NCBI RefSeq assembly: GCF_000143415.4 | Contig: NW_003314374.1 | Location: forward strand, 331,225-395,224 | Length of the DNA stretch: 64,000 bases | Source of the DNA: Selaginella moellendorffii | Lineage: Eukaryota; Plantae; Lycopodiophyta | Direction of reading: 5' to 3' | Shown: positions 23,888 through 47,858 of the stretch, in pieces | Numbering within the stretch: position 1 is the first letter of the stretch | Layout: each line of letters opens with the position of its first letter | Notes under the pieces: generated by a model | What the model saw: only the letters and a program-made list of their open reading frames with translations | Told to the model about the DNA's origin: nothing | The model's database searches: none | Position numbers and translations under genes: made by a program

Positions 23888-25040
23888 TGTGAGACACAAA
23901 TTTTTAAGCCCAAAAATGGAGTAAAAAAGGTGCCATATGGTAGTTATCAAAGTGGAAGTCTAACAAGCGTAACATATTTGGACCAAAATCTCCAACTTTG
24001 AAAGTTAAAAGCGGGAATGGAATTCCAAACAAAGTGCTTGAAGAATGAGCATGAAGCAATTGGTGAATGAGTCTCTAAAAAGGGACATAAGGGTTGATAC
24101 ATAGCAAGTGTCGGGACACATAAAAATGTTAGGAACAAGTCCAAAAAAGATTCTGAGAAGGAGTTCGAGATGGAGTCTAGGATGAACCCAAGATGGGACT
24201 TGAGATAGACCTAAAATGGAGTCTAAAATGAAGTCTGATATAGATTTGAGATGGACTTAAGATGGAGTCCAAAATGGAGTCCGAGATGGACCTGAGATAG
24301 AGTCCAAGATGGACTCAAGATGGAGTCCAAAGTTGAGTCTGAGATAGACTTGAGATTGAGTTTGAGATTGAATTTGAGATGGACTTAAGATGGAGTTTGA
24401 GGTCGAAGCCGAGACCAAGACCGAAACTGGCAGAATGTGGGGAAAGTACCCATAAAGCTTGTATAAGGCCAAAGTATTTTGAAATATTATCCCAAAGTCT
24501 CAAATTATGGAAAGAAAGAGGAGCAATCCTTTTGTATAGTGACCAAAGGCATGGTCATGTGGCGAGGAAGCCTTAGAGGTTAGGCCTTCAAGTCCTAACC
24601 TAATAGCAGTGTTGGTGAGCATAGTCATGGATGGAAAAGGATTTGGTAGAGACTAAAGAAGGGATATTGTGGAAGAGCGTTCCCCATATTTTTTGGCATC
24701 CTAAGGATGTTAAGAGGTGGTCTTGGGATGATCACTCATGAATAAAGGGTTTAGTCTTTGAGAGATAGGACTACAGTATAAGTGGTCTTGAACTATTAAT
24801 GAGACAAGGGTGAATAAACATGGCCTTAGCATAATGGGCTAATAAGTCAATAATACTTTTGGGTTGTCTATCATAAAATTTGACATATGGAGCAATTGAA
24901 CCAAATGCAAAAGGTAAGTGGCATAGATGTCATTCACGGGGCTAATATGTCCCCAAGGCTGGAATAGAACTTATAAAGGTTGTGAGTGAAACTCTTCCAA
25001 ATAGTCAATCACGTAAAATGGAGCGAAATGGAATTTGGCT
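23888..25040 (-). mobile_element. LTR-family copy with the 12-bp array at about 24150-24425
   Basis: Begins TGTGAGACACAAAT, the reverse complement of the 21477 terminus. Colinear similarity to 20160-21477 and 58719-60150. Confidence 0.75.
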
Positions 25041-28464: not shown

Positions 28465-30230
28465 ATGGGGCCCCTGGGATCGTCGCTGGCGTCTCAGTTT
28501 TGGAATGAGGAGGTGGAATCCACGCGCTCGCTGGAGGCGTGCGTCCGCTCGCTCCCGCGCGAGCCGCCGCCGCTGGCCATGGTGCGCGGCAGCAAAATCT
28601 CGCGCTCGCAGCAGCTGCTGCTGCTCCAGAGGCTCCTCCGCTTGCCCTTTGCACCGTCGCTTGCTCCGGATTGTGATTGCCCTAGCGGGATTGTGCTGGA
28701 TCGCGTGGTTGCCAGCACTGGTGGAACGAATTGGTAAGGCTTAGGCTCTTTTTTTCTCTCTATTTTCTTTGCTAGTTTCGTTCAGTAGAATGTCCACTGT
28801 CCTTTGCCAAACGACGATGAAGAGGAACTAAATTATAATTCAGGTGGGCGACTCTAACGGGGCGACTGCGAGTCCAGAGACTGTTTGCGAAGCGTCCCGA
28901 AGCTAAGTTGGAGCTGAATGGTTTCTCCGAAGCAGCGGCAGAGAAGCAGCAGCAGCGTGATGGCAAGTGGACGCATGCCAAGCGTCTTCTTGACAAATCG
29001 CTCTACGCATTGTGCATGCGAACAAAGCTTCTGCTTGGTCCCTCCACGTCGTTAAGCATCAAGGCCGAGATGGACTCGCTAGAGGACTGGGGTTCGAGCG
29101 AGGTTCCTATGAGAGTTCACTCCAAGCTCCTTCACAAGGTACGCGGGCTCATTTTTTCCTGGTTTTCCTCTGAGCCAAGTTTTTCCAGGTTGGTTGGTCG
29201 CTCGAGTCGAGATAAGAACCAGTTTTGATGCTCTCGTATTGTGGATGCCTGCAGCTCAAGAAGCACGATTTATCACTGGAGGCTGCATGGCACGAACGTT
29301 ACATGGACAGAGAAGCTCGTTACTGGGACGTTCCACAGGCTGTCTCACTCGACATTGCGTCCGTGGGATTGAGCTCGGGCTTGTACTACAGGCTTGGTGT
29401 CCACCATAGCTCGGGACAGTCGCAGAATTGCTGCGGAGGGGCCGGAAAGGAGATTCCATGGGGGGCAATGCCTGGAACTTGTGCTCAAGCAGCTGTATCT
29501 TATGGGAAGGAGATTGATATCTGGAAGGAAGACGATGCTCACTTTGGTCGGAAGCTTCACAAGCCTTACAATCTTCTAGCTGCTCGTCCACATATCACAC
29601 TTTCTGGAGTTGTCGGTAAGTCTCCTCCGAGAGGAACGGAGTTGTTATCTTTTTTATACAGGTGGTGTGGTGAATGCAAGCCTTGGACAGAGAAAGCAGC
29701 CTCTCAACGCTGCGAATCCTTCGCTGGTGAAATCAAATGGCGATCGCTCCGTCTCGGCCGATGCATTTGGCTCGCTGGGAGTGACGGCACAGTTCGGTCT
29801 CTTTCAGAGGTTTCTCCTCGATCACACCAAGTTTGCTGCTAGAGTTGATATTGGAGGAGCTTCTTCCACGGTTTCCGCAAGGACTTTGAGCGCAAAGTCA
29901 TCATCGCCTTCTCTTGCCGATGGACAGAATGGAATTACGTTCGCTCTTACTATGCAGCAGCAGGTTTGCTCGTCTTTGTTCCTTGTCTTTGTTTTTTTGT
30001 CTGAGGACACTTTTCTTGTGTTTGCTTCTCAGGTGCTCGGACCTCTTCGTGCTCGTGTGGATTCCAGATTCTCCCCGGATCTCTCGACGTGGAACGCTCG
30101 CCCAGCTCTCCAAGAGGTAACATATGGCTTAGATTGCTCCTTGGAGTCTCTAGGTGCTGCGAAGCTTGTAGTTTGGTACTGTCCGACACGCTCGGAAGGT
30201 ATGGCAGAAATTCGTTTACTTGAGATATGA
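28465..30230 (+). CDS. TGD4: TRIGALACTOSYLDIACYLGLYCEROL 4-like chloroplast outer-envelope lipid transport protein
   Basis: FWNEEVESTRSLEACVRSLPREPPPLAMVRGSKISRSQQ, LEAAW..RYMD...RYWDVP, GLYYRLGVHH and GAAKLVVWYCP...EGMAEIRLLE. Five exons: 28465-28733, 28844-29138, 29255-29615, 29662-29963, 30033-30230. Confidence 0.88.
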
Positions 30231-30440
30231 AAGTTGGATTGGCGTGGTGGCGATGATTCCCGACGCCAAGACGACGAATTTTCAGAGCGCTCTAACCGAG
30301 AAGAAGGTTTGTTTGTAATCGATAAGTAAAGCTCTTTCCTTGTCTCGGGAAAATTTTCGAAGAACACCAGGAAAAAAATGAGTCTTGAAAATATAACTTT
30401 GAATGTTTCTGTTTATTTGCTACAATATTATAAATTCATC

Positions 30441-31919
30441 TCAGTATTTGAGATGGTCTCTAAGCTTCCGCACGGCCGCTTTCAACGTATCCTCATCCTT
30501 GCAAAAGGCAAACCTCACCAAATGCTTGCCATCCTGTGGATCTTCGTAGAAACCACTGGGAGGAATCGCTGCCACTCCCACCTTGTGGACCAGATGCATG
30601 CAAAACTCCATGTCGTCTTTGAAGCCAAACGGAGTATGATCCACCATGACGAAGTACGTCCCCTGCGGCTCATAAACCTTGAATCCCACCTCCTTGAGCC
30701 CCTGGACGAGGATATCCTTCCTGGCGATGTAAGCGCTCCTCAGATCCTGGTAGTAAGACTCTGGAGCCTCGAGCGCTGCCACAGCACCCCATTGCAGCGG
30801 AGTGGCCGTCGAGAAAGTGATGTTGGAGTGAGCTTGCCGGATGCCATAGCTGAGATGCGGAGGAGCGATCGCCCAGCCAACTTTCCAGCCCGTGAACGAG
30901 TACGTCTTCCCCATGGAGCTCATCGTCACGGTCCTCTCGAACATCCCTTTGATCGACGCGAGGGAGACGTGCTCGCCATCGAAAACCAGCCTGCTATACA
31001 CCTCGTCCGTGAATGCCAAGACGTCGTGCTCCACGCACAAGGACGCGATGAGCTCCAGCTCCCCCCGGGAGAAAACTTTGCCGGTCGGGTTGTGAGGGGT
31101 GTTGACGAGGATCGCTCGGGTTTTGCTCGTGAATGCCGCGCGGAGCTCGTCCTCTGGCACTGCGAATCCATTCTCCGGCCTGAGCACCACCGTCTTCATC
31201 TTTGCGCCAACCATCGCTGTGACTACCTGGTAGACGTCGAAGAAAGGAGCAAACATGATGATCTCGTCGCCCGGATCGAGCAAGCCCAGAATCGTGGAAG
31301 AGATGGCCTCCGTGCAGCCGCAAGTCACCGTGATCTCGGTGTCGGGATCCACTTTCAAGCCAGTGTCCTTCTCAAACCTCCTGGAGATGGCGGCATTGAG
31401 CTCTGGAACTCCAAACCCCCGCGCGTACTGGTTTCTTCCCACTGTCCGGAGCGCCTGGATCGCGGCCTCGCGGATGAAATCCGGGCCATCGAAGTTGGGG
31501 AATCCCTGCCCGAGATTGATCGCCTGGTGCGTGAGCGCCAGGGAGCTCATGAGCGTGAAGACCGTGGGCTGGAACTGCTCCAGCCGCTTGGAAACCTGGA
31601 AAATCTCGCCAGAATCTCATCACAACCATATCGATTGAGTGGAGTGGCAAAATCTCACCTGGAGAGGGCGAGAGATCACGGCAGAGGCAGCGGCAGCGGC
31701 AGCGGCGACGCCATTCCCCACCACCTCGTCCTTCTGCGCAGTGGCCGCCATTCTCACGCCGCCGGATCGCGGCGGCGACAATGGAGGAGGAGGATCTCCA
31801 ATGGCGTGCGCGTGACCTAGAGATGAAGCTCGCAGCAATGGCTGGCTATGGCGGACGCCGAATATTCCCGCTAGTGATGAAGAGAGCTCCATTAGAGTCC
31901 TTCTAGGACTCCTCCTCAT
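30441..31919 (-). CDS. PLP-dependent class I/II aminotransferase (kynurenine/methionine aminotransferase-like) with a transit peptide
   Basis: INLGQGFPNFDGP, NTPHNPTGKVF, DEVY, SMGKTYSFTGWKVGW and VRFAFCK. One intron at about 31596-31658. Start at ATG 31919 or 31892. Confidence 0.93.
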
Positions 31920-31951
31920 CCCCTCTTCTTCCAAGAACCCAGTATAAAGAA

Positions 31952-33730
31952 ATGGCGATTCTAGATCCAGGAAGAACAAACCTCTCGCGATTCCGGGAAG
32001 AACAGAGCTCCTCCTCCTCCAATTCCAGCCCCGGTGGCGATGACGCCGTGGAATCCTTCGCGCAGCAGCTAAAATCCTCGGCCAGATCCCAAAATCTTGG
32101 CGAGGGCCGGCGAGTCCACTCCCGGATCCTCGAATCCGAGCACTCCGGCAATCGCTACCTGGAAAATCTCCTCATCGACATGTATGGCAAGTGTGGCAGC
32201 GTGGAGAACGCGCGCCAGGTCTTCAACTCGATCGCTCGCCCCAATCCCTTCTCCTGGACGATCATGATCCAGGCCTACGCACACAACGGGTATCTGTCCG
32301 AGGCGCGATCGATGTTCTACGCGCTCCGGGATCCCTCGATCGTGGCGTGGAACACGATCATCTCCGCGCACGCCCAGCTAGGGTTCCTCCGCGAGGCGCG
32401 CGATCTGTTCGATCGAATGCCGGAGAAGGACGTGGTATCGTGGAACGCGATGATCGCAGCGTATGCCCAAAATGGGCATCTGGGATCCGCGAGAGCGATG
32501 TTTGATTCGATGCCGCGGAAGAACGTTGTGTCGTGGAACACGATCATCACTGCGCTCGCGGAGAATGACGAATTGGAAGAAGCCCTAGCGATTTTTGAGA
32601 AGATGCCACAGAGAAACACAGTCTCCTGGAACGCTATCATTGCAGCACTTGCCAGGAGTGGGCATTTGGCGGAAGCGCGGGAATTGACGGCCAGGATGCC
32701 CCGTCCGGACGTGGTCGCACGGACGGCTGTGATTGCAGCATACGGCGAGAGCGGGCAGCTCATAGCTGCCCGGAGCTTGTTCGAGGAGACGGCTGAGATG
32801 TGCCAGGGGGACGTGATCCTGTGGACCACGATGATCGCCGCATATGCCCAGCACGGGTATCTCCAAGATGCCAGAGAGCTCTTTGATCGCATGCCTCACA
32901 GGAACGTAGTGTCGTGGTCCGTGATGGTCGCAGCTTATGCCAAGTTTGGGCGTGTGGAAGAGGCCAGATTTATGTTTGATCGAGTTTCTCGAAAGGATAT
33001 CATCGCATGGAACACGATGATCCAAGCCTATGCACAGAACGGGTATTGGATCGACGCAAAGAGTGTTTTTGATAGTATGCCACAGAAGGATTCCTTCTCC
33101 TGGAACGCTGTGATGAACGCTTACATACTCAGCGGCCAGTTCGAGGACGCCGAGGATTTCTTCCAGGAGATGCCGCAGCGGGACGTCGTGTCTTGGAACT
33201 CGCGGATTGCTGCTTTCTCTCTGCGTGGAAAGCTTGAGCAAGCGAAGGTGGTGTTCGAGAGGATGCCGGAGATGACTTTGGTTTCGTGGACGAGCATCGT
33301 TGGAGCGTTCGCGCAGGCGGGACGAGGGAGTGTTTCGCTGGATCTGTTCCGGAGGATGGAGCAACAGGGCGTGATGGCGGACGAGTTTAGTCTGGTCACC
33401 TTGCTCACGGCTTGCAGCCACTCGGGGTTGACGGAGGAAGCGTGCACAAACTTTGTGGCGATGACTGTGGATCGAGGCTTGAGTCCCGGCGTGGAGCACT
33501 ACTGCTGCATGGTTGATGCTCTTGGGCGAGCAGGGAGGCTCAAAGATGCTCAAGAGCTCGTTGACAACATGCCTTTCGTCGTGGATAGTATGCCATGGTC
33601 GATCCTGCTGGGTGCCACTCGGGTTCAAGGCGATTCTTGGCTAGGAGCCAACGTTGCTAGCAACGTTGAGCCGCAGAGATCGTCGCTCTATATGCTGCTC
33701 ACGAGCACCATCTCGTCGTCAAGTAGCTGA
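31952..33730 (+). CDS. PLS-class PPR protein rich in 31-aa short repeats, with a truncated E domain and no DYW
   Basis: About 14 repeats of VSWNAMIAAYAQNG.L..AR.MFD.MP, then ACSHSGL and EHYCCMVDALGRAG. Confidence 0.95.
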   Translation: MAILDPGRTNLSRFREEQSSSSSNSSPGGDDAVESFAQQLKSSARSQNLGEGRRVHSRILESEHSGNRYLENLLIDMYGKCGSVENARQVFNSIARPNPFSWTIMIQAYAHNGYLSEARSMFYALRDPSIVAWNTIISAHAQLGFLREARDLFDRMPEKDVVSWNAMIAAYAQNGHLGSARAMFDSMPRKNVVSWNTIITALAENDELEEALAIFEKMPQRNTVSWNAIIAALARSGHLAEARELTARMPRPDVVARTAVIAAYGESGQLIAARSLFEETAEMCQGDVILWTTMIAAYAQHGYLQDARELFDRMPHRNVVSWSVMVAAYAKFGRVEEARFMFDRVSRKDIIAWNTMIQAYAQNGYWIDAKSVFDSMPQKDSFSWNAVMNAYILSGQFEDAEDFFQEMPQRDVVSWNSRIAAFSLRGKLEQAKVVFERMPEMTLVSWTSIVGAFAQAGRGSVSLDLFRRMEQQGVMADEFSLVTLLTACSHSGLTEEACTNFVAMTVDRGLSPGVEHYCCMVDALGRAGRLKDAQELVDNMPFVVDSMPWSILLGATRVQGDSWLGANVASNVEPQRSSLYMLLTSTISSSSS

Positions 33731-33753
33731 AAAGAGTGACTTTGTTCCTGCTG

Positions 33754-36516
33754 TTACCAGAAATCTTCGCACGAACAAGCTCCTCCTCTGAAATGGTGAA
33801 ACCTGTAAGCGTCTCTCACCACGATCTCCCGTCCCACAAGCCCGGAGATGAACTTGGTGGCACTGTGACAGTCGCTGCAGACTCTCAAGTTCTTCATGAT
33901 CCTGAGCGGCTCCCCCGCAGCAGTCGAGATCAATCCAAAGGCAATGGCCAGTTTCTCACTGTGCTGACAGAGCAGCGATTCTTTCTCTTTAGCTTGCAAG
34001 TCGTATACCACTGCCTTGGTGTCGCAGACAAAGCCCGCTCGTTTCATCTTATCGTTCAATCGTTCCAGCTCCCTGTGTATCTCGCTCGACCGAGGATGGC
34101 TCGTGTCTCCCACTCGAAACTCGTGTATCCGGCCCTTCACTTCGATCCAGCTGAGTCCTGGCTCTTTCTTTGGTCCCAGATCCACCATACTCTTCCTCAC
34201 TGCCGCGGCCTCCGGCCACTTCCCAGCCCCGGCATATAGATTGTGCATCACCAGGTAAGGTCCTGTGGATCCTGGATTCAGCCCGAGAATTCTCTGAGTC
34301 GCCCGGCCACCACGCTCCAAGTCACCGTGGAGCTTACACCCACACAGGAGAGTTATCCACGGGAAGACGCTCTCGTCCCCAAAAGGCAGCCTTTTTACGA
34401 ACTCTTCTGCGTGTTCTAGCCATCCTGCTCTGCTCAAGAGATCTATCACGCAGCTGTAATGCTCTGCCTCGGCTGGAAGCCCATAGTCGACGTGCATGTT
34501 GAGGAAGTAGCTGTAGCCTTGGGCAACCAGTCCTGCATGGCTACATGAGGAGAGAACGCCAATCAGAGTGACGCTACCTGTGTCGATTCCTTCGAGCTGC
34601 ATTGTCTGAAAGAGCTCAACGCCACGAACGCCATTGCCGTGCTGAGCATTCGCTGCAATCGCCGAGTTCCAGGAGACTTGGTTCTGCACGGGCATGACTC
34701 GGAAGAATTTCGCTACTTCTTCCAAGCTGCCACACTTTCCTAGAGCACAAAGCAAGCCGTTAGCTACTTCCACATTTCCGAGGAACCCAGTCTCGGATAA
34801 ACAAGCTTGTACCAGTTTTGCAGCTCGGATCGACGCGAGATTGCCAGAGGCGTTCAAAACCGCAGTGAAGGTGACATCGTTAGGAGTAACACCTTCCAGG
34901 AGGATACTTCTGAAAATGCGGAGTGCTTCTCTGTTAAGACCGAGTTGGCTGTGGACTCCCACCATAGCGGTCCACGAGATGACGTTCCGAGTAGTCATGG
35001 CGTCAAAAATCTCTCGAGCATCCTCCAAGCTTCCCAATCTTGCATACATACTCACCAAAGCATTCTGCACAGGAATTTTGCGTGTCAGCTCGCTCTCTGT
35101 CAGCAAAGAATGAATCCACTTACCTTTTTCCAAAGATCCACAAGCGTTGAAAACTGTCACCAGGCTCACAGTGTCAATACTTACTCCCCCGAGCAGCATA
35201 AGCCTGAAGATAGTGAACGCTGCTTCAAGCTGCTCGTTCTCCACGTACAGCGATAGAACCGTGTTCCACATCATGATACTCGGCTGGTCACGATCTTGTC
35301 CGAGAAGCAAGCCGCTACTAAATGCCGACTTCGGACTCCTACATCTGCTATACATGTTCATGATCGCGGTGCCCGTCACAACATCCGCCGATTCGATTCC
35401 ACAGTCACCTTCAGCTGCAAGAGTTCTCAGAAAATCCCCGTGTTTCAGGTGAGCTGCCAAAAAACACGCATTAAGAATAGCAACATAAGTTATCCTGCTC
35501 GGGAGCTCACCTACGAGTAGCATCTCCCTGAAACACTTGAAAGCCTTGTCGTGGAAACCATTGCAGGCACTGGCCGTGAGCATAGCGTTCCAGGACACAA
35601 CATCCCGCTCTTGGATCCTCTCGAAAATCTCTTCCGCGTCGTCAACTTTCCCAAACTTTCCATACATGTTTACCAAGGCTGTTTGCACGACCGTATCAGC
35701 ATCGCCACCCAGCTCCCTGGCAAACGCATGGATTCGAAGACCCTCGGAGAAATCTCTAGAGTGGCAGCACGCGTTTAACGCAGCAACACAAGTGCCTTTG
35801 CTGGGAGTGACACCGTCGAGCCTCATTTGTCGACAGAGCTCCAGAGCCTCATCTCCTTGCTCGTGAACAACGAGCAGCGAGATCATCGCGTTCCACACTG
35901 CCGCGTCTCGGACAAGAATCCTGTCGAAAAGACCCCGAGCACTGTCCAAGTCTCCACACTTCCCATAAGCATTCATCACCGCAGTAGCCACGATCACATC
36001 CAGCTCGAGAGATCCACAAGCTTCCACTCGAGCTCGAATAGTATCCACTTCCCAGGGGTGGCCGCAAGCACCGAGAATCGCAACGTAAGTAACGTCGTTG
36101 GGCATCACTCCCTGTAGCTGCATTTCCCGGAAGAGATGGAATGCCTCCTTGGGATGCCCACTCCGGGCATTCACGCCGATGAGAGACGTCCAAGCAACCA
36201 CGCTCTTGTCTTGGATCCCCTGGAACACCGCCCTGGCCTCTTCTGGGCTGCCGCATTTGCAATACATGGCGAGCAGCCTGGCGCCGAGAAAATCGCCTAC
36301 CTCGATCCCGTTCCGGAGAATCAACCCGTGAATCCTCCTGCCCTGCGCGAGATCGTGGAGCCTAGCGCACTTGTGGATCAGAGCGGCGAAGGTAGAAGCA
36401 TCGGCCGATCCATCGTCGAAATATTTGAGCTCGTCGGTCCGATGCTGCGGCGCGGATGTCGAGAAGCTCACCGGATCGATACGAGGCTTCCTCCTGCCAA
36501 GAAATCGCCGCGTCAT
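33754..36516 (-). CDS. PLS-DYW PPR protein (organellar C-to-U RNA editing factor)
   Basis: PLS repeats, PG box PGLSWIEV, HSEKLA, CSDCH and a C-terminal DFW. Intronless, 920 aa. Confidence 0.97.
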   Translation of the reverse strand: MTRRFLGRRKPRIDPVSFSTSAPQHRTDELKYFDDGSADASTFAALIHKCARLHDLAQGRRIHGLILRNGIEVGDFLGARLLAMYCKCGSPEEARAVFQGIQDKSVVAWTSLIGVNARSGHPKEAFHLFREMQLQGVMPNDVTYVAILGACGHPWEVDTIRARVEACGSLELDVIVATAVMNAYGKCGDLDSARGLFDRILVRDAAVWNAMISLLVVHEQGDEALELCRQMRLDGVTPSKGTCVAALNACCHSRDFSEGLRIHAFARELGGDADTVVQTALVNMYGKFGKVDDAEEIFERIQERDVVSWNAMLTASACNGFHDKAFKCFREMLLVGELPSRITYVAILNACFLAAHLKHGDFLRTLAAEGDCGIESADVVTGTAIMNMYSRCRSPKSAFSSGLLLGQDRDQPSIMMWNTVLSLYVENEQLEAAFTIFRLMLLGGVSIDTVSLVTVFNACGSLEKGKWIHSLLTESELTRKIPVQNALVSMYARLGSLEDAREIFDAMTTRNVISWTAMVGVHSQLGLNREALRIFRSILLEGVTPNDVTFTAVLNASGNLASIRAAKLVQACLSETGFLGNVEVANGLLCALGKCGSLEEVAKFFRVMPVQNQVSWNSAIAANAQHGNGVRGVELFQTMQLEGIDTGSVTLIGVLSSCSHAGLVAQGYSYFLNMHVDYGLPAEAEHYSCVIDLLSRAGWLEHAEEFVKRLPFGDESVFPWITLLCGCKLHGDLERGGRATQRILGLNPGSTGPYLVMHNLYAGAGKWPEAAAVRKSMVDLGPKKEPGLSWIEVKGRIHEFRVGDTSHPRSSEIHRELERLNDKMKRAGFVCDTKAVVYDLQAKEKESLLCQHSEKLAIAFGLISTAAGEPLRIMKNLRVCSDCHSATKFISGLVGREIVVRDAYRFHHFRGGACSCEDFW

Positions 36517-36703
36517 GCCGGGGCGGCAGCGCTGTCTCCATCGCCAGTGCTCGAAATGCCCATAAACCCTAGAACTCAGAAAGATTCTAAAGAATATTCT
36601 CTAAAAAGAACCAATGGGAAGACGCCACTGTTTTATTCCACTTGGCAATGCGGGTTTTATCATCTTGCTTTGGAGAAAGTAGGGTTTATCATCTATCAGA
36701 GCG

Positions 36704-37375
36704 ATGGGCAGTGCCGGTGCCGGTGCCGGTGCCGGTGGCGATCGAAATGGCGAGCTTGTGACGGTGAAGGGGCTGGCGCTTGACAGGTACATGGGCCGCT
36801 GGTATGAGATCGCCAAGATCCCTACTCGATTCCAGCCCAAGGCCGGGATCAACACGCGCGCGACCTACACGCTCAAACCGGACGGCAGCGTCGACGTGCT
36901 CAACGAGACCTGGGTAAATGGGAAGCTGAATCACATCAGCGGCGTGGCCTGGAAGGTCGATCCCAAGAGCGAGGACGCCAAATTCCTCGTCAGGTTTTGG
37001 GTGCCTCCGTTCTTGCCAGTGTTTCCAGTCACTGGGGATTACTGGGTGATGGCGATTGGGGATGACTACGAGTGGGCGCTCGTCGGCCAGCCCTCTCGAA
37101 GCCTCTTGTGGGTAAGTTCCTTGATGTTCTTAGGAGATTCAGTTCCTTGATGTTCTTACTTTCGTTCTTGTGGAAAGGTTTTGGGCAGGGAGCCAGCGCT
37201 GAGCGATGAGATCTACTCCAGGCTAATGGAACTGGCCAAGGAGCAGGGATACGATACCAGTGCCGTGGAGAAATCCAAGCACGATGAAATCTCCGAGACG
37301 GCACAGGGAGAGGAGCGAGCTCCCAAGAAGGATAGTGGATTTTGGTGGCTCAAGACACTCTTTGGCAAGTACTGA
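36704..37375 (+). CDS. TIL: Temperature-induced lipocalin
   Basis: RYMGRWYEIA, NTRATYTL, VLNETW, VRFWVPPFLP...VTGDYWV, ALVGQPSR and a C-terminal GFWWLKTLFGK. Intron at 37112-37178. Confidence 0.95.
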
Positions 37376-37466
37376 GATCAATCTATCTCACACGATCTTC
37401 TATACAAGAAACAGCGAGCTCTTCTAGATTGATAAATCATAAAGTCGCGAACATAGATTGTATTTT

Positions 37467-37894
37467 CTACTTGAATAAATAGTAGCAGCCTCCATAGCCT
37501 GCGAAGCAAAGTACCGTGTAAATCCAATGATCAAATCAATAGTAGTAGCAGGAGACTTAGACTTACTGGGATCAGTCGAAGAGATCAAGGCAGTGTTATC
37601 AAAGTAACAGTTGTAGTCATAGCGAGCTTTCATCTGGAAGTAATAGTTGTAGACCCAGGAGGCATGCGCGTGGATGTTATCGGGATAGACGCAATTGCCA
37701 GTGTACTGGATTGCGGAGCAGTCAACCTGTGAGCACGCATAATCGAGGCCCTTTTGGAGCGAATCCGGAGGAACTGCTGGGTTTGCAACGCACCAGACCT
37801 TTCCATTCACAACGCGGCCGCTTGGCTGTGGGGCTGCAGCGCGAGCAAGCAGCACAGACACTGCGAAACTCAGAAAAAACGCGACAACTTTCAT
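37467..37894 (-). CDS. Secreted X8 (CBM43, callose-binding) single-domain protein
   Basis: Signal peptide, then WCVA, LQKGLDYACSQVDCSAIQ..G.C..P and HASWVYNYYFQ. An intron in DPS gives the C-terminus DPSYGGCYYLFK*. Confidence 0.9.
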
Positions 37895-38246
37895 CGTTGA
37901 CGGGATGATCGAAACTCAAGAAAGCTTGGCTTAAAAAACTGTATATATTTAGAGGCTTTTGTTGTGTGTGCCACTCGTATTTTCTGTAAACCCCAGAAAA
38001 AAGTGAGTGGCTCATAGTATATGTATTGTGCTGTATTTTAAATCCCACATTCACTATTTTTATTATCATAAACTTTGCGATGAATACGATTTGATGCATC
38101 GAGGTCTGTAGCTTGCAAGTTTCGTCCAAGCCACTGGAAAAGAAAAGCTAGACGAACAGCATGAGATCACAATGAATATCATCCAAGATTATCCTTGCAA
38201 GCTCTATATGATGTTGTGATCCAAACCAAGAACATGCATGCTAAGT

Positions 38247-39314
38247 TTACATAAACTGGATGAAAGCAGGAGCTTGTACACCAGCCAAGCTAAAAACCAC
38301 GCTCAGCCTTCCCGTTTCTACGTTCCTGGAAAGAACGTTTACCTTGTTCGAGTTTTGAAGCCCAACCACGACCATCTCCCCGGACGAATCAAGGGCAAAA
38401 TGGCGAGGAAACGAACCACCGACTCGATCCAGCCCCAGCCAGGTAAGGCCACCATCACCCTCAGCGTCTACTCCAAACACCGCGATGGTATCCTCGTCGT
38501 TACCACGGTTGGACGCATACAAATACCTCCCGTCTGGCGAAAGAGCCACTTCCGCCGCTAGGCACGCGCTCTTGTTCGCTACGCTATCATCCAGAGTGGA
38601 CCAGCTCTGGATCAAACGCAGTGCTCCATTCCCCGGATCATAAGAGAGCTGGCTCACGGTGTTTGCGAGCTCGTTGAGCACGTATGCGAATCGCTCGTCG
38701 CGGGAGAAGATCATATGCCGAGGACCCGAGCCAGGCTCGAGTGAAACCTCCGGAGTCGCGGCCTCGTCGAGCTCCCCAGTCGAGACGTTGAGAACTCGGA
38801 CGTGGATCTCATCGGTGCCGAGATCACAAACGAAGACAAACTTTCCCGAGGAGTCCGTGATGATCTGGTGGGGATGAGGACAGTCTTGCCGGGGATTGTT
38901 CCTCGGCTCCGTGAGGCCTGGAACCTTGATCAGCGAAACCGGCTGCTGGTGATGACCCAAGAGCACACCATCGGAGCCATGGTTGACCTGGAGAACGCCA
39001 TAGCTGCCACCCCTGTAGTTCGCAAACAAGATCCACTTACCGCTGGGGTGGACGATGATCGCAGCCGGGACCGAGCCACAAGGGATGGGGTGGCCGAGAC
39101 GAGAGAGGTGTGGAGAGAAGGAGAATGCCTCGACAGCGCCACTCTCCACTTCGTTGACAGCGTAGATAACGTTGCCCAAGTGGGGATGCCTGGCCAGAAA
39201 AGTGGGATTGGTACCTGATGGAAACGAGGCGATAGAGTGGAGCTGATGTTTCTCCAGCGCTAAGAGGTGGATTTCGTCGCTATAGCCGCCGACCAACAAG
39301 AGCTGCTTCGCCAT
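38247..39314 (-). CDS. Beta-propeller lactonase, bacterial/fungal-type 6-phosphogluconolactonase (Pgl/YbhE, cycloisomerase-2 family)
   Basis: ANY.GGS, HPHQ, DLGTD, GSGPRH, YVLNEL, SPDGRYLYASNRG and FPRHF motifs. The CDS has no introns; ATG at 39314. Confidence 0.9.
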   Translation of the reverse strand: MAKQLLLVGGYSDEIHLLALEKHQLHSIASFPSGTNPTFLARHPHLGNVIYAVNEVESGAVEAFSFSPHLSRLGHPIPCGSVPAAIIVHPSGKWILFANYRGGSYGVLQVNHGSDGVLLGHHQQPVSLIKVPGLTEPRNNPRQDCPHPHQIITDSSGKFVFVCDLGTDEIHVRVLNVSTGELDEAATPEVSLEPGSGPRHMIFSRDERFAYVLNELANTVSQLSYDPGNGALRLIQSWSTLDDSVANKSACLAAEVALSPDGRYLYASNRGNDEDTIAVFGVDAEGDGGLTWLGLDRVGGSFPRHFALDSSGEMVVVGLQNSNKVNVLSRNVETGRLSVVFSLAGVQAPAFIQFM

Positions 39315-39379
39315 CTTCTGTGAAAAAGAAAGGTAGAGAGTGGCAAATGCTCTCCCCAATCATAAGCCTACTAGCCCAT

Positions 39380-39451
39380 TGCTCCCAGTGAGGATTGAAC
39401 TCACGACCTCTCGCTTACGAAGCGAGCGCACTACCAGTATGCTATGGAAGC
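39380..39451 (-). tRNA. tRNA-Thr(CGU), copy 1
   Basis: GCTTCCA acceptor stem, anticodon arm CTCGC-TTCGTAA-GCGAG, T arm GTGAG-TTCAATC-CTCAC. The D loop reads ACTGGTA, whereas copy 2 has the canonical AGTGGTA. Confidence 0.92.
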
Positions 39452-40418
39452 CTTACCGATGAAACACCTCAAAACAAGCATATTCTAAACTTAGATATTT
39501 CCAATTTGCTAACGACAATGGTCTTACATTGTTAACTTAGTGTATGTTGTATTTAAGAAAGAAAGTTTATAAATTATACAAAATTAACTTAAATTAGTTA
39601 AAGGTAATCTTAATGATGGAATAGAGTTTAAAAGAAAAAGGAACTCCATGCTTTGCACACATGGCGCGAATGGGCATTTGGAAAAGGCACTGGATATCTG
39701 GCTCATCGCCACGAAATCTCTTTGACAAGAATGACATTGAAAATGCAAACTTCTTCGATTTACAATAGGACTATGAAGACTAAGCACCTCTCTGCCGGCC
39801 GCCTTCAAGAAGCATGAGCCTCTTCCAGGAGCCCGACGAGACTTGGTCTCATGGACCAGGCGGAAGAATTCCATAGGATCAGCCTGGAGAGCGCGATGAT
39901 CACATCGTCTTTGCGAGCGTGCTCACAGTTGGTGAAAGTCTCTGGAAAATCTCTCAGTAAGTCTTCTTGTCGATGCGTTGACAAGGCCGAGGAGCTCATC
40001 CACTCTCGCTGCTGGCTGCTTGCCAGAGACCTGCCAAGAGACTCTCGGCGCTGGGATTCTTTCGAATTTCTAGACGCTCAGCAAAGTAAATACAAATATA
40101 TGATTGCTGTTATTGCACCAAACATGCAATTGGAAAGAGAACTAGATGGACAAAGCCAAAGAAGAAGAAGATCAATAAGTCTTGATGTTCTGTAGTGCCA
40201 AAAACATAAAATGAAACACTTAGATATTAGGAATGCGATAGATAGCAGAAGAGATCCTGGGCCAAGATGCTGAGAACACAACTTGAAAGAAGCATGAAGG
40301 CACTGGACACGATGGAACAAAAAACAAACAAGGGCGAGATAAATTTTTGAGAAGATAGGAAACATAAAATGCTAAAAGTTACCTGTGGAGAATGGAAGAG
40401 CTTCCTGCCCAGTGTCCT

Positions 40419-40630
40419 TCATAAGATACGTGATCTGCATGTGGACTTTTGAAAAGAATGTTGACGAAATGTTTTTGACGAATGCCGACGAAAAGCTGGC
40501 AAAGTTTTGGATTCTCCGGCAGCTCCTTTCCGGGAATAAATCTGCTGGTCTATCCCCGACGACTGTAAGAAAGCGCTTCCAAGAGCTTGAATTGTGTCCT
40601 GAAACTCGTCCACTATAAGAAGCCGTCATT
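40419..40630 (-). pseudogene. UvrD/SRS2-type SF1 helicase fragment
   Basis: LLIVDEFQDT (motif II), then LTVVGD and QQIYSRKGA (motif III) split across reading frames. Confidence 0.65.
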
Positions 40631-41219
40631 TAATGGTGGAAGGATTAAAAAAATCCTTCCACCAAACGAAAATGAGTTAGTTTGAAGAAACTGATGGTAA
40701 CTTTGTAAAACCTACAAACCTGATAGATGATGCCCGTAGATGAAGGATGCTCAGTCTCAGGTTTCTGAGTTTGTGGAGATCGTGCATAGTGAATTGTGTA
40801 GGCATGTAGCTTCTGCCGGGGTTGGATACAGGCAAGGATTGTCTAGCAGATCCTGTTGGAGCTCTGACCGCCTGGCAAATATGCCTGGGTTTAATAAGCT
40901 TGAATTATTGTCCTGGGAAATTTCCGTTTCCTCACTTCCACAGCTGGGCAACTGAAATGTTATTCATAAAACCATCCCAACCTTATCAATAGTACACCAG
41001 CTGGAGGCATAGTACCACTAGGATAGCTACATGCACGCTAAATTCATCTTCTTCAGAGGTCCAAGCCATTGTTCTTTTTCTTCTTCTTTCCTCTTTCCTT
41101 GGCTCGTGAACTCCCTCGAGTTCCTACGCATCTCTGCAACAACGGCACTGGTTTGATCAATGCATCCTCTCTCTTTCGGTTTTGATTTTGAAACGTTGCC
41201 TTTGGTGATTTACCAACAG

Positions 41220-41659
41220 AGGAATCTCATACGAAGCTCAAGGGCGAGAACAATTACTTTGCACTGGTAATCTACTACACCGAAGGTTCCTTGACGCTCG
41301 AAGTCAAAAACTCGTGGCTCAACTATGGGAAATGGGTTCGTTCCACGAACGATTTCACGGAGATTAGATCTCCCAATGGTCTCACCATGAAGGCGTGGGG
41401 CGAATACCACATCACTGCCTCTGGCAGGAACTGGTCTCCCACTGGTACCGAGGGCTCTTTTGATATTTACACAAGCGATGGCCAGAAGGTAGTGTATGTC
41501 TACTGGGACGTTTCTTATGGTGGAACGGCGGAATGGAAGAAAACCGCTCATGATAGCCGGTTCAAGGTGACGGCCAGAAGGATTGGAGAATCTCGTCTGG
41601 ATGTGACTATGGTCATCAAATATATTGGCACTGAGGCCACTGAAGAAGCTATTGCTTAA
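41220..41659 (+). CDS. Aegerolysin-family protein (terminal exon; upstream exons inferred)
   Basis: LEVKNSWLNYGKW...ASGRNWSPTGTEGSFDIY...KVVYVYWDVSYGG matches the aegerolysin pattern. The frame stays open back to a CAG acceptor at 41219. Confidence 0.8.
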
Positions 41660-42844
41660 AAGTTTGTGTTTGAGAGTGAGCTTCTACGCTTGTCGTGTGA
41701 ACTGTTTTTATAATGCTAAATAATCAGCAACTAGTTTAAACTATTGAAGGTGCAACTCTCGTGACGAAACTGCCTGGCAAGAACATACAATAGAAACAAA
41801 TAAAAGAAGAAGAAGATCTATAAGTTTGGTGTTCTTTTTTATTCTGCCAGAGGTCAGCTCTCGTCTTCTGTTATCTATCACATTCTTCGTTTGAGAAAAA
41901 TGTAAAATTTCCTGGGCACCCTGCCAAGATCAATCAAAGCACAGATAAATCGAGAACACCGCAAAAAATCAAGAATCACAATTGCAAGTGAGTTGTTCAG
42001 ACTTGTTCGTGTGATTGATGACTGCTCCTGGCCACAAACGTAAGATGCTGCTAACTTTTCTGAAATAAGATAGACCAACAAAAGTAGGTATTTTGCCCTT
42101 GTTCCAGTTCCTATTCATGTTCCTTCATATTGCTATAACATTATTGATTTAATGATCGTAGCATACAGTCCTCTTTGCAAATAAAGTTCTGGCCAAATTT
42201 TTGAGTGATTTTCTGGCTTATAAATTTTCGATAATTGAGGAGGTTGCAGCGTCCAGCCACCAGAGATGATACGTGGATTCTCTCACAACGACTTCGAAGA
42301 AAACCAGCACTGGTGATACAAGAAAATCTGCCCAAAATCAGCTTCACGTATTATACCGCAATCATATGACGAAACAAAGATGTCGCATAGAACAAGAAAG
42401 GTCGTGGTGGGAGGACGTTGAGATCCCCTGTGAGAGGATTCAAGAGAATGAAGCTCTTGCCATTGTGCCCAAAGATCAGTCCACGGGCAAGGTTCTGGCA
42501 GTGGCTTTACCTTATCTTTGTCCGAAGGGTTGCATTTATATGGACTTTGCTCACCAGATTGGTATTTGTGATGGAGAGACTTGAACCATGAGATCTTTCC
42601 ACTGCTTGCAAATAGATTTTACGTGGGTGTGTAGAAACGCTGAGAGGCTTTGTCGAGGAAATTACTTTGCCTTGGATTCATGTGAAAGAAGGCTTCCATT
42701 TGCTGCTACAAGGACACGCTTGTGGTTACATTGGGAGTGCTGGATTACAAGATAAAATCTTAGAGCACCCGTGGAAACCGAAATGCTTCCTCCTAATTGT
42801 CAATGAATATAGCTTTTAATTAAAACGAATGGTTGCTACAATCC

Positions 42845-42916
42845 TGCTCCCAATGAGGATTGAACTCACGACCTCTCGCTTACGAAGCGAGCGCACTACC
42901 ACTATGCTATGGAAGC
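42845..42916 (-). tRNA. tRNA-Thr(CGU), copy 2
   Basis: Same cloverleaf as copy 1 with 2 differences. A TTTT terminator lies about 20 nt downstream. Confidence 0.93.
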
Positions 42917-43047
42917 CTTACATTTGAACACCTTTTAACACAAATTAGGGCTCTTTGCAGCTGAATCTCATTACTGGGCGAGTACACAAGAAGGAAATTC
43001 TTAGAAGAAACCGCGCTGTACATAATAGAGAACTTCCTGGGGGGTTT

Positions 43048-43407
43048 CTAGCCATCGTGCTCCTGCTTCTCCTTGGATGCCTTCTCCAGACGATCAGCGA
43101 TCCAGTGCGCGCGCGCCTTGTCCTTCTTCACGATCCGCTCCCACACCTCTGGCTTGGAGGCGTGTCGCCCGCTCTGGAGCTGGATTGTAAAACCCCCATT
43201 ATTCTCGCTCCCGTCCAATTCCACCTCCTGCTTGCCGTGATCTTCCACTTTCGCGGCCTCCTTGCTGCCGTGGTCTTCCAGTTTCACGGCCTCCTTGCTG
43301 CCGTGATCTTCCAGCTTCGCGGCGTCCTTGCCGTGGTCTTGGGTCGCCGCCTCGGCCATGGCCACCAGCGCAATGCAAGAGAATAGGAGAAGAATCTTTG
43401 ACACCAT
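43048..43407 (-). CDS. Small secreted protein with 10-aa repeats (EDHGSKEAAK/L) and an aspartic-protease-prosegment-like C-terminus
   Basis: Signal peptide MVSKILLLFSCIALVAMAEA, four DHG repeats, then GFTIQL...ERIVKKDKARAHWIADRL. Confidence 0.75.
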   Translation of the reverse strand: MVSKILLLFSCIALVAMAEAATQDHGKDAAKLEDHGSKEAVKLEDHGSKEAAKVEDHGKQEVELDGSENNGGFTIQLQSGRHASKPEVWERIVKKDKARAHWIADRLEKASKEKQEHDG

Positions 43408-43570
43408 CCTGAAATGCCGACATTGGGAGAGATTTCAAGAGCCAGATAAGAGATCTAGAGATCTAGAGAGGAAATTTCGCCTCTTACCTCGAGCAAATCG
43501 ATCTCGCTCGCCTCGCCTTCTCCTTTCGCTTTACCCTAAAATATATTCGAGAGTTTTTAGGGTTTTGGCG

Positions 43571-45518
43571 ATGGCGGGGGCGCTGGCGTGTGTCCAATCC
43601 TCGTGGCGTTGCTGCGTAGCTCGCAATATGGTGCGCGGCCGATCGATCAGCTACAGGAGCTTCCATGATGCGATCCCAGCGATCAAGCAGCAGCCATTTG
43701 TCTACAGGCAAGAGGTCTGTCCGAGCGATCGGTCGCGCGTTTCCCAGGATTAATGGCGGCATTTCTCTTGTTTCTTTCTTTCCAGGTCCATGCGCCAATG
43801 TGCTCGATCCGAGACTTGCCGTGTGATTTTCCCGCTACTTCTTCTTCCCAGCCCCAAGCTCAGAGCTCGTCTACATTGTCCAAAGGACGCATTCTTCTCG
43901 TAGATGGAAGCGCTGTTATTTTTCGCGCCTACTACAAAGTCATGGGTAAGAAAGCTTCGTTCTTTTGCTCTATACGTAATTCTTTTCTCCTTTGGCAGCC
44001 AAGGCTCACCATAACTTGATACCAGAGCTAGAATCTGAGGCCGACTGGGTTTTAACAGTTTTCACAGCCTTCACCACAGTAAGTGCCATGCCACCATTGA
44101 ATCTAACGTGATTTTTCCTTTGTTTCCTAGATACTGGGACTGCTCGACTTAAGCCCGTCTCACTTCGCTGTAAGTTTCTCGTTACACAATTCTGTGAGCT
44201 TACTCGAGTGCTTTAGGTTGTTTTCGATCATAAAGGTGGGTTTGCAGACGAGCAACGATGTAAGACGTGTGTGTGTGCATGTCTTTCGTGGTTTCTAAAT
44301 TAGTTTTTGCCATCGGATGGAAAGTGCTAAAGTCATTTTCACAGGTCTGACTTTTCGGCATACGATGTTTCCCGAGTATAAGAAGAATCGTCCACCGACG
44401 CCAGACACGATTTATCAGGGCCTCGATCATCTTAGACCTGCTCTTGTTGCCATGGGGATCAAAGTGATAGAAGTAAGTGAAATCAGTCTCTTTTTTTTTT
44501 CCTTGCAGTGGTGCAAGCCATATTTGTTTGTTGCAGGTTCCGGGCGTTGAAGCCGACGATGTGATCGCGACACTAGCAGTCTCAGCAGCGACTTCAGAGA
44601 TGAAGGTAAAGATGAAGGTTCTTTCTAGTTGTTCTATTAAACGCTTGATAATCTTGTCTGCTCTCACAGGTACGAATCGTTTCACCCGACAAAGATTTCT
44701 TTCAAATATTATCTCCAGATATCCGACTTCTGAGGTTCGTTCCGAAAGGTGCCGGGTATGTTCTTCAGGTTCAGGTATATCTCCTGCTTGACCGTGTTTT
44801 CTCTGTAACAGGATGGTTTCGTTTGGCATGGAAGAGTTCTCAGCAAGATTTGGAAGCTTGGAACCAGCACAGTTTGTGGATGTACTGTCTCTTATAGGCG
44901 ACACATGTGACAATATACCAGGCAAGTACTACCATACGATTGACTCAAGGCTACGCTCCATAACTTGTAACATTGCAGGTATTCCAGGCATTGGCGAGAA
45001 AACTGCAATAGAGCTTATCACAAAGTTTGGTCAGTGTCTTCACTACTAGCAGCGTGATTTTCTTGCATAGCTGATGGACTCTCTAATTTTTCTCAGGGTC
45101 CGTTGAAAATTTGTTACAGCAAAGAGACAAAGTGACTACGAAGAGGGCTCTCAAGGGGCTTCTGGCTGACAAAGGCGAGGCTTTACTTAGCAAACGCCTG
45201 GTATATAATCCAGTTAAGCATTTCTCTATTGCTTACGTCCTGAGTTCCACAAGCAGGTCGCGCTGAGGGCGGATTTACCATCTTACATGCTACCATTTAC
45301 AATGGATGATTTTATCTGGCGCAAAGTTCACGTAAGTCGTGCTGCGTGTTTTCTCTTTTCCATCTCAGTGTTCATGGAATGCTTGCTTCCGTCAGGATGA
45401 TGGCCAGCGGCTGTTTCAACTTCTTAAAGCAATGAGCTCGTTTGTGGACGGCGAAATTCACGTCGAGCTACAGGACCGAATCTTGGGCTTGTGGAAAAAA
45501 CTGGAAACAAAGCCGTGA
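43571..45518 (+). CDS. OEX1: Organellar 5'-3' exonuclease (DNA Pol I N-terminal/FEN family), multi-exon
   Basis: LLVDGSAVIFRAYYK, VVFDH, FRHTMFPEYKKNRPPTPDTI, VPGVEADDVIATLA, SPDKDFFQ and GDTCDNIPGIPGIGEKTA. GC-AG intron at 44922-44978. Confidence 0.9.
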
Positions 45519-45672
45519 GAGCGTCAGGAACGGGTTTACTGAGCAGGAGGGAGCCAATTTTTTGAAGGGAGGCTCCTCGAGCTAGAAAAAGTAGCACACG
45601 ACCAGGACAAGTGTTCATTGGGCATATTCGTTGGGGCTTTGAGCTGGCGGTGATGGCTATGGTACTTCTCAG

Positions 45673-46376
45673 ATGGCCAAGACAAGGGCTTCGAGGTTGA
45701 TGTTGCGAGGTACAGGTTTTAGCTCCACAGCTCCACTGGGTTGTAGGCTCATAGAATGCGGGAATCCTGGAGCAATGGCTAGCTCCAGGAAATGGAAGAA
45801 CAGGTCCAAGACTTCGAGGAAAAGAAGCGTTTTGGTCTTGGGGGCTGTTACACCGGCTGCTGGAGACGCTGGGTGGGATTACAGCGAGAGTTTGCGTCAA
45901 GGCTTGCAGAATGGCAGTAGTGGTGGAAGCTCGAGGATTTATGCAAAGTGGAAATGGTGGGAAAGGAAAAACGAGAGCGCTCTGGACAAGGACGAAGCAT
46001 TACCGCTTCCGATGACTTATCCCAATTCAGAGCCACTTCCGAAGGAGGAGGTGGAGAAGGCGGCCAACTGCGATCCCGAGATAGAGGTACATCACCCCCC
46101 TGGGAAGAGAAAGAACTTACGCTCGAGTTTGTGGCTTGCAGAATTGTAAGAACGTTGTGTACCAGTGGACGGGCGAGTGTAGACGTTGCCAAGGCACCGG
46201 AGTGGTGAGCTTCTATCGGAAGAATGGAAAGGAGGTGATTGGCAACTGCATCTCTTGTCTAGGAATAGGTGCGCGCCTCCATTTCTTCTTTGCTGCTTAG
46301 CTTACGTGAAAACTTCCTTGCAGGATATGTACACAAGCATACCAGCAGAGACGTGGAGCAAGACGAAATATCTTGA
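45673..46376 (+). CDS. Plastid DnaJE-type (DnaJ cysteine-rich zinc finger) protein
   Basis: LPLPMTYP...CDPEIE|[22 protein letters not shown]...CISCLGI|GYV. Introns at 46087-46141 and 46269-46323. Confidence 0.85.
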
Positions 46377-47141
46377 GGCCGAGTTCCACAAATCTTTTCG
46401 CGAAAATGGTCCGTTTCTCTCCCCCGCATTTTTGTTTCCATTCATTCCTGCGAGCAATAAAGCAGCAGCGGTCCGTTAAAAAGAGAGTTGGATCCAAGGA
46501 AGACGCACAAACAGAAAAACTGTGGCGAGAAAACATACTTAGCTGTCAGCTTCCTTTGCCGTGCCAAGATGTGGCCAAAGCTTCGCCACCCATCATCTTT
46601 GCCATTCCATTCGAGCTTGGATTGGATTTGTCTTTAAGCTCTCGGCCGCGAGGATTCAGTTGGAGGAGCTTGAATGCTTGTCCATTGTTGTGGATATCCA
46701 GCTATGAAACCAACAAAACTCCACCCAACTCGAATCAGAGAAAAAGGAAACAACCAACCAAACCTTTGCTCTTTTTGCTTGCGAGTTGCGACGCCCCGCT
46801 GCGCGACAAGGCTCAAATCTGTGAGCTTGATCCTGCAGCAGCAAGAGGGGGTCAAATTGGATATGCATTCCCCGGCTTTGCTGTTTTTGGTACCTCTCGC
46901 GTTTCTGACTTTTGCGGTATGTGCCCATGATTGGCTGCGGCTGTATACACGCACAAAACTCCCGTAAAACTTGCTGGCTTTCGAGCATGTCTGGCATACT
47001 TGTTTTGTCATCTTTCCTTTTGCGTGTTGAACTTTCTGCAGAGCAACGCTGCAAAATCGGCGGATGTCTGTTAGACAAAATAGCAAAAGAAGAAACTAAT
47101 GTGTGTGACTTGAACCTTTAGTGAATGATCTTCTTTTTGCA

Positions 47142-47181
47142 GTTCGCAAAGTTCGCAAAGTTCGCAAAGTTCGCAAAGTTC
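47142..47181. repeat. 9-bp tandem repeat (GTTCGCAAA) x4.5
   Basis: Directly visible, upstream of the bHLH gene. Confidence 0.9.
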
Positions 47182-47858
47182 TGTGCGAGCTGACCTCACT
47201 GGACTAAAAAAACACCATCTTTTGCTTGGTGTCCACGAAACCAACTTCCATAATCCACAAAATCCGCCTGCAAATGATGAGAGTTAGCAGGAGAAAAAGA
47301 AAGGAAATCTTTGCAAAGTCAAATACCACATCCGTTCGTAGAAGTCGGAGGAAAGGACGATGGTTTCGTACTGAACTGAAGCTCCTTTTTCTTCTTCTTT
47401 CTGCTCGGCTTGTAGTTTCTAGCTCGCTCGCTCGCTCGCTCGGAGTCTCGCGGAGAGTCGTAGGACGTTATGCTAAAGGGACAAAAACCAGCGCAGCTGC
47501 CATAATATCCTCCCATAAATGCAAGCCAAATTGCAGTTTTCGTTGATCTTTCGGAGTAACCCCATTATTTCTCTTCTTGTGCTCACCACCAGGCAGCAAA
47601 TGCTCCGGCTGTCATAGCCCCGTAACTCTTTCCCTGGAACCACCTGTTCTTCCTCGTCTCTCCATTTTTTCCTCTCCTGATGTTGCTGTATTACGTCGGG
47701 CAAGTCTTCTCACTTCTCACAATTCTTCTTCTCGCAATTCTTTCCTTGGTTGGTTCCCAGCAGGAGAACGGAAGAAGGCTTCAGCAGCTCCAACAAGATT
47801 TTCGGCCGTGATATGGTAGCTTCCACCTGGAGTGGAATTCTTGCCGCGGCCAGATAGT

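Follow-up and report, generated by a model that had tools for sequence, protein, structure and literature searches.

In Selaginella moellendorffii, a complete tRNA-Thr(CGU) gene (copy 1) lies directly upstream of a lactonase gene and on the same strand. Our preferred, still tentative reading is that it is an ordinary autonomous Pol III gene in the 5' flank of the lactonase, and that the splice signals on either side of it are incidental; we give this reading a probability of about 0.42. The analysis followed up a sequence-only reading of the 64,000-nt stretch of DNA under study (hereafter, the window), which had proposed that the tRNA fits almost exactly inside a 5'UTR intron of the lactonase gene. 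DNA alone does not decide whether these 139 nt are spliced, and a tRNA-bearing intron is possible; between a real intron and incidental signals, we consider it slightly more likely that the intron is not real.

The layout described from the letters was recovered in full by direct read-out, ARAGORN and Rfam: CG/GTAAG, the 72-nt tRNA, a 62-nt trailer, 139 nt in all, and then AAG ATG (Table 1). On the minus strand, GTAAG occupies positions 39456-39452 and abuts the first base of the tRNA (G1, at 39451), while the lactonase start codon is found at 39314-39312, with AAG placed between it and the CAG that ends the trailer. The GT to AG distance around the tRNA is 139 nt, with an A+T content of 50%. 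Downstream of the tRNA, four or more T in a row first occur at 39327-39323, as a T5 run 52 nt away, so that the polypyrimidine tract does hold the first good Pol III T-run, as had been claimed. The downstream ORF had been named a lactonase, and PF10282 matches it with an E value of 6e-81.

The DNA is nuclear: positions 30038-47314 of the window correspond to scaffold GL377678.1 (GCA_000143415.2; locus L001), with 100% identity over 17,277 nt. The start codons of the lactonase and of a divergent aegerolysin gene are separated by 1,124 nt (39315-40438), and the tRNA lies within this interval. Other neighbours include a 920-aa PPR-E-DYW protein, an X8-domain protein and a lipocalin; this gene content, aegerolysin included, is in keeping with a land plant. 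A coding-potential check of the GC-rich block at 39700-40438 gave no Pfam matches, and haplotype SNPs in this block showed no codon periodicity. The block upstream of the tRNA is AT-rich and contains a TATAAA motif, which has no statistical weight in such DNA; the motif could serve as a Pol II TATA box, provided that transcription of the lactonase begins upstream of the tRNA.

Table 1. Features of the tRNA-Thr/lactonase locus, in window coordinates
Feature	Position	Strand	Basis or remark
Lactonase ORF, 355 aa + stop (LOC9660559, RefSeq)	38247..39314	-	PF10282 seven-bladed propeller
Pyrimidine tract + CAG; candidate 3' splice site, Y-Patch-like	39318..39340	-	
Trailer of tRNA copy 1, 62 nt; 3' part of the proposed intron	39318..39379	-	
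tRNA-Thr(CGU) gene, copy 1	39380..39451	-	ARAGORN; Rfam RF00005; 72 nt, complete cloverleaf
5' flank, 18 nt, common to copies 1 and 2	39452..39469	-	BLAST repeat, alignments
Upstream ATG in the would-be exon 1	39479..39481	-	local translation only
TATAAA motif in AT-rich block upstream of copy 1	39566..39571	-	read-out
Aegerolysin gene, divergent from lactonase	40439..41659	+	genes called on locus L001, mapped to the window via the 100% match; ATG confirmed
tRNA-Thr(CGU) gene, copy 2	42845..42916	-	ARAGORN; Rfam 67.2 bits

Copy 1 has the sequence features of a nuclear, type 2 Pol III gene. It scores 65.3 bits against RF00005, far above the gathering score of 29, and ARAGORN calls it Thr with anticodon CGT. 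The cloverleaf is the minimum free energy fold of the tRNA, even when folded within the 139-nt context. Both internal promoter boxes are present, as judged by reading the sequence rather than by a Pol III model score: the B box (GTTCAATCC) is intact, and the A box carries a C at position 15 that is seen in this haplotype only. No CCA is encoded. An oligo-T follows, as expected downstream of a working Pol III gene, with the T5 run as the earliest terminator. We also considered a bacterial or organellar origin for the tRNA (the lactonase looks bacterial) and rejected it on weak grounds, namely the lack of an encoded CCA, the presence of two nuclear copies with common flanks, and a sole further Rfam hit that is antisense noise.

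The second copy of the same tRNA serves as a control for the donor-like GTAAG. A 119-aa ORF stops 132 nt before copy 2, which points towards the 3' terminus of the aegerolysin gene, so that no gene follows it. Copy 2 is nevertheless directly preceded by GTAAG (42917-42921), and a TTTT is found 19 nt downstream of it, as against 52 nt to the terminator of copy 1. Together with their 18-nt 5' flanks, the two copies form a 90-nt repeat with 93% identity by BLAST, and the tRNAs themselves differ by the two SNPs already reported (C15 in copy 1 versus G15 in copy 2, and C65 versus T65). When the flanks are aligned without gaps, GTAAG (-5 to -1) and TTCA (-12 to -9) are identical and the three bases between them differ. 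Both elements hold these positions before the host-less copy in both haplotypes. In the other haplotype, copy 2 has kept the GTAAG flank, its tRNA being broken by a 17-nt internal deletion that leaves it at 28.7 bits, just under the Rfam threshold. Because the same GTAAG precedes a tRNA that has no downstream gene to use it as a donor, we conclude that it is part of the 5' leader of this tRNA lineage. From its conservation, TTCA is likely to be the Pol III start region, with the CA at -10/-9 as a plausible start site.

Comparison with the allelic region (GL377620.1, locus L003; haplotype B), in which gene order is the same, shows that copy 1 is kept in both haplotypes. An intact tRNA-Thr(CGU) scoring 66.5 bits is found at the corresponding place; it has the canonical G15 and carries a C27 to T change of its own, which makes a G-U pair in the anticodon stem. 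Two of the 72 tRNA positions (2.8%) thus differ between the haplotypes, against a synonymous divergence of 0.024 in the lactonase, so that within these small numbers the tRNA shows no sign of constraint beyond that of neutral DNA. The C at position 15 had been suggested to reflect a lower reliance on Pol III. The base itself is present, but it is a SNP private to this haplotype and hence does not point to a lasting decrease in reliance on Pol III. The trailer differs by three SNPs and a 10-nt indel (a deletion in haplotype B), all within its first 35 nt, and the proposed intron is accordingly 129 nt long in haplotype B; no difference is seen in the last 27 nt of the trailer, in the donor or in the 18-nt flank. 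In the AT-rich block farther upstream, 173 aligned nt show a single mismatch. For the lactonase, dN/dS was 0.48 against the other haplotype and 0.30 against its paralog (see below).

In the reading that we favour, Pol III would initiate about 9-10 nt upstream of the tRNA, at the conserved TTCA, and would terminate at the T5 run, which precedes the lactonase ATG by 9-13 nt. The transcript would consist of a leader with GUAAG, the tRNA and a trailer of some 52-57 nt, from which RNase P and RNase Z would free the tRNA. GTAAG would then be a by-product, part of a leader carried by the tRNA family at both loci, and the pyrimidine tract would be the terminator, possibly also acting as a Y Patch or as a short CT-rich leader of the lactonase mRNA. 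This mRNA would begin within the last ~45 nt before the ATG. The tRNA, its boxes, the common leader, the terminator position and the conservation in both haplotypes are observed; the start and stop sites, and the absence of splicing, we infer.

The splice signals are good ones. The 5' splice site (G/GTAAGG), the pyrimidine tract and CAG/A follow the consensus and are comparable to those of 13 local introns from gene models, which a local script reconstructed from CDS-only gene ranges. Six contiguous pairs with U1 are possible at the donor, G/GTAAG, and the acceptor consists of a 20-nt pyrimidine tract followed by CAG. Neither signal is specific to the host gene: GTAAG is common to the host-less copy 2, and the tract contains the tRNA terminator. 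In the window, GTAAG occurs at a frequency of 0.00072 per nt per strand and the acceptor-like pattern at 0.0024. Blind coincidence would rarely produce both signals (roughly 0.7% x 2-15%), an estimate of limited force because GTAAG was inherited with the tRNA flank and a T-run is expected after a Pol III gene. Most local introns measure 47-71 nt, although three longer ones of 192, 209 and 516 nt stand out, and the proposed intron is thus two to three times the usual length.

Upstream start codons bear on splicing from both sides. The trailer contains two, at 39379 and 39363, and splicing would remove both of them. The would-be exon 1 contains another, at 39481, if it is longer than ~22 nt; after the proposed splice this ATG would open a 20-codon uORF that runs across the lactonase ATG in a different frame. 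We enumerated all ATG-to-GT segments within 1.2 kb upstream as candidates for an in-frame coding exon 1, and none was signal-peptide-like or conserved between the haplotypes. Exact look-ups with the lactonase in its unspliced form, the RefSeq proteins (old and new) and the 119-aa protein returned the genome assembly only and no RNA contigs with the lactonase or its neighbour. A word search for partial ORFs in RNA contigs, made with the first 110 aa of the lactonase, likewise returned the genome assembly only.

The strongest argument for the proposed intron comes from a sister gene, which has a genuine acceptor at essentially the same place. S. moellendorffii carries a second lactonase locus, present in two haplotypes (L002 and L004) that encode proteins of 384 and 388 aa, with no tRNA nearby. 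These paralogs (LOC112350430 and LOC112345641) have an annotated 54-nt GT-AG intron, which ends 6 nt ahead of the ATG corresponding by homology to the lactonase start codon in the window. Gene range and protein length together allow a unique solution for the model, in which an 87-nt exon 1 encodes 29 signal-peptide-like residues. The acceptor is a pyrimidine tract followed by TAG, and since the unspliced frame stops at that very TAG, the gene model is credible.

The paralog cannot, however, date the acceptor in the window, because homology stops at both boundaries of the coding sequence: at the nucleotide level (dS 0.235) it spans AAGATG to the stop codon only. A blastn search (word size 7) for the exon 1 or promoter of the paralog in the region upstream of the lactonase in the window gave a best E value of 0.056. 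The bacterial homologues that are closest in local structure begin 3-8 residues before the first conserved strand, and so does the lactonase in the window; with this short N-terminus shared between them, exon 1 of the paralog may be a later gain. Our literature searches on the locus, on the protein accessions and on horizontal transfer of the lactonase found nothing.

How, then, do the possible readings compare? A real 5'UTR intron, in which the 139-nt GT-AG segment is spliced and hosts an autonomous tRNA gene that is made mainly by Pol III, is a possibility that we take seriously and yet lean against. The start of the lactonase mRNA would in that case precede the tRNA, lying for instance ~30 nt downstream of the TATAAA motif, and the tRNA would be a nested gene. 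The strong donor and acceptor point this way, and so does the position of the acceptor 3 nt before the ATG, as 5'UTR introns of plants, including Arabidopsis, tend to end near the start codon (PMC1482700). The paralog adds its own acceptor 6 nt before the homologous ATG, and its exon 1, plausibly a signal-peptide exon, joins the reading frame only through splicing. The haplotypes agree in donor, pyrimidine tract and AG, and the trailer differences spare the whole of its last 27 nt, which include the would-be branch region, whereas the trailer interior has changed. Space also speaks for a hosted tRNA and against a stand-alone one: if the mRNA begins after the tRNA, only 62 nt are left for promoter and leader, with two upstream ATGs inside them, so that a downstream start would limit the 5'UTR to at most 46 nt and would place the Pol II core promoter across tRNA and trailer. 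At least nine sense intronic tRNA genes are moreover known in Arabidopsis, with host introns that are spliced normally (PMC6152437). Against the intron stand the origin of the donor as an inherited tRNA flank, the overlapping out-of-frame uORF that exon 1 would bring, a length that seems atypical among local introns in either haplotype, and an upstream region with neither an in-frame exon nor a homologue of the paralog exon 1; as homology with the paralog ends with the coding sequence, the shared acceptor position may be coincidence. The pyrimidine tract itself can be read differently, being also Y Patch-like on the sense strand. The Y Patch is a direction-sensitive core-promoter element of plants that peaks around start sites, where pyrimidine patches are normal (PMC2094075). 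That tRNA genes lie 1-170 nt from protein-coding genes is common in S. moellendorffii (PMC8166872), and this too suits the stand-alone Pol III gene, as do the far-above-threshold tRNA, its allele with canonical G15 and the leader that it has in common with copy 2.

Two further readings would link the tRNA to the lactonase more closely. We regard it as unlikely that both are carried, unspliced, on one RNA, through transcription by Pol II or through Pol III passing the terminator. The two genes are on the same strand, their 62-nt gap falls within the 1-170 nt of the published candidates from this species (PMC8166872), and the terminator is late and consists of a single T5 run. An unspliced leader would however retain two or three upstream ATGs, and cleavage by RNase P and RNase Z would strip the mRNA of its cap. 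Supplement 15 of PMC8166872 holds no S. moellendorffii entry for GL377678 or for tRNA-Thr, which is a weak negative, as the pipeline behind it filters for host introns and expression. Very improbable, in our view, is the proposal that the tRNA is released mainly from an excised Pol II intron (a 'tRNA-tron'), or that splicing, tRNA processing and Pol III occupancy exclude one another and so couple the output of lactonase and tRNA-Thr(CGU). Here U1 binding would overlap the RNase P site at G1, and the pyrimidine tract would double as the Pol III terminator. The geometry permits this, since position +6 of the 5' splice site is G1 of the tRNA and the T5 run lies within the tract, and there is a precedent in GUT15, a tRNA-like RNA derived from a Pol II intron that inhibits splicing of its host intron (PMC6152437). 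Yet copy 1 is equipped for Pol III in a way that GUT15 is not, with boxes, conserved leader and terminator; its A-box change is a private SNP; copy 2 has the same flank with no host gene; and canonical intronic tRNAs have no effect on host splicing in Arabidopsis (PMC6152437).

If the intron is real, the tRNA would fit its 5'UTR host intron unusually tightly, and the locus would be a compact natural construct in which 139 nt are shared by Pol III, RNase P/Z and the splicing of a Pol II transcript; many tRNA-mRNA co-transcripts have already been reported from this species. Should the intron not be real, the locus is a caution that a tRNA leader and an oligo-T can mimic a textbook intron beside a start codon. 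Either way the class is already known, and the biological consequence is probably small.

All of the readings except the 'tRNA-tron' and its strong coupling are known arrangements; only the latter would be new, and nothing favours it. In Arabidopsis, sense tRNAs are found within introns or UTRs of 19 protein-coding genes, including two cases in a 5'UTR (PMC6152437); examples are At3g12587 with tRNA-Arg(CCG), and AT4G03410 with tRNA-Gln in its 5'UTR (PMC6152437, Table 2). These nested genes resemble copy 1, if its intron is real, in being canonical, in having Pol III signals, and in lying sense-oriented within a Pol II gene or at its 5' end. The difference is one of fit: the putative 139-nt intron barely exceeds the pre-tRNA, its 5' splice site abuts G1 and its pyrimidine tract contains the terminator. 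Also comparable are the 49 dicistronic tRNA-mRNA candidates reported in S. moellendorffii among those of vascular plants (PMC8166872), which share with the lactonase/tRNA-Thr pair the species, the same-strand orientation, a range of gaps that includes 62 nt and a canonical poly-T.

The nearest precedent for a 'tRNA-tron' is GUT15, whose tRNA-like RNA comes from the last intron of an Arabidopsis Pol II lncRNA (PMC6152437) and is likewise a tRNA-shaped RNA within a Pol II intron. GUT15 cannot be transcribed by Pol III and is no true tRNA, whereas copy 1 is a complete tRNA that comes with both internal boxes (A and B), a leader and a terminator, and hence has the autonomous Pol III promoter that a GUT15-type element lacks. 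The tRNA-snoRNA dicistrons of plants (Kruszka et al. 2003), as relayed in PMC8166872 and PMC13578239, are similar in that a tRNA with a delayed or missing terminator is co-transcribed with the next gene. As relayed there, they are short Pol III transcripts with gaps of 1-16 nt, whereas the gene that follows copy 1 is a 1.07-kb protein-coding ORF.

The lactonase upstream of which tRNA-Thr(CGU) copy 1 lies looks like a bacterial acquisition, and the same holds for its counterparts at the other three lactonase loci. Among 5,197 hits, we found close relatives at only four loci, all in S. moellendorffii, which correspond to two paralogs in two haplotypes each: the locus in the window and its allelic region in the other haplotype (L003, GL377620.1), and a second, paralogous locus (L002 and L004). 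The best matches after these are bacterial and metagenomic proteins with 34-43% identity, including examples from Planctomycetota and Gemmataceae. The two paralogs show a dN/dS of 0.30, and both are under purifying selection.

In both of its haplotypes, the paralogous lactonase has an additional 5' exon that encodes 29 signal-peptide-like residues and is connected to the rest of the gene by a 54-nt intron. This paralog would therefore be secreted, whereas that of the window would be cytosolic.

At the other end of the gene, the RefSeq model XP_002990983.2 removes a 209-nt intron, which puts an unrelated tail in place of the last 31 conserved residues of the lactonase. The unspliced ORF retains the C-terminus that the protein has in the other haplotype and that the paralogs and bacterial homologues share; the intron reflects alternative splicing, or else it is an artefact of the model. 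For the PPR-E-E+-DYW gene in the window's haplotype, the RefSeq model gives 905 aa across the identical 2,763-nt range, implying that 45 nt are taken out internally, a removal that the uninterrupted ORF does not need.

Coordinates of the features in the window and in the allelic or paralogous loci
Feature	Location	Strand or orientation	Remark
Lactonase ORF	window 38247-39314	-	
Intron of RefSeq lactonase model	window 38134-38342	-	209 nt, GT-AG; XP_002990983.2
Region with 5' exon and intron of paralogous lactonase	L002:8001-8150, L004:8001-8150		
PPR-E-E+-DYW ORF	window 33754-36516	-	920 aa
Aegerolysin gene	window 40439-41659	+	
MITE-like hairpin	L003:6169-6258		perfect
tRNA-Thr copy 2, pseudogene allele	L003:5126-5180		allelic to window 42845-42916
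12-nt repeat arrays, unit ATCTCGGACTCC	window 20971-21244 and 24188-24401	inverted	~3 kb apart

The other haplotype's tRNA-Thr copy 2 is a pseudogene: a deletion of 17 nt leaves it without the variable loop, the anticodon arm's 3' half and the first T-stem base, and the TTTT terminator region is rearranged as well. Each of the three intact tRNA-Thr copies carries one private change (C15, U27 or U65), so that none of them is the inferred ancestral sequence.

Elsewhere in the window, the two ATCTCGGACTCC arrays, which could be subterminal repeats of a transposon, border an AT-rich block (22-28 kb, GC 0.28-0.40). Strong strand asymmetry extends throughout the 8 kb of positions 10001-18000 (GC skew +0.22 to +0.35, AT skew -0.17 to -0.36), where long ORFs are scarce.

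Divergently adjoining the lactonase, and flanked by the two tRNA-Thr copies, is a gene of the aegerolysin family, which is unusual in plants. The haplotypes are just 86% identical in this region, and its counterpart in the other haplotype contains a MITE-like hairpin, for which MIR1120-type models give weak matches on each strand.
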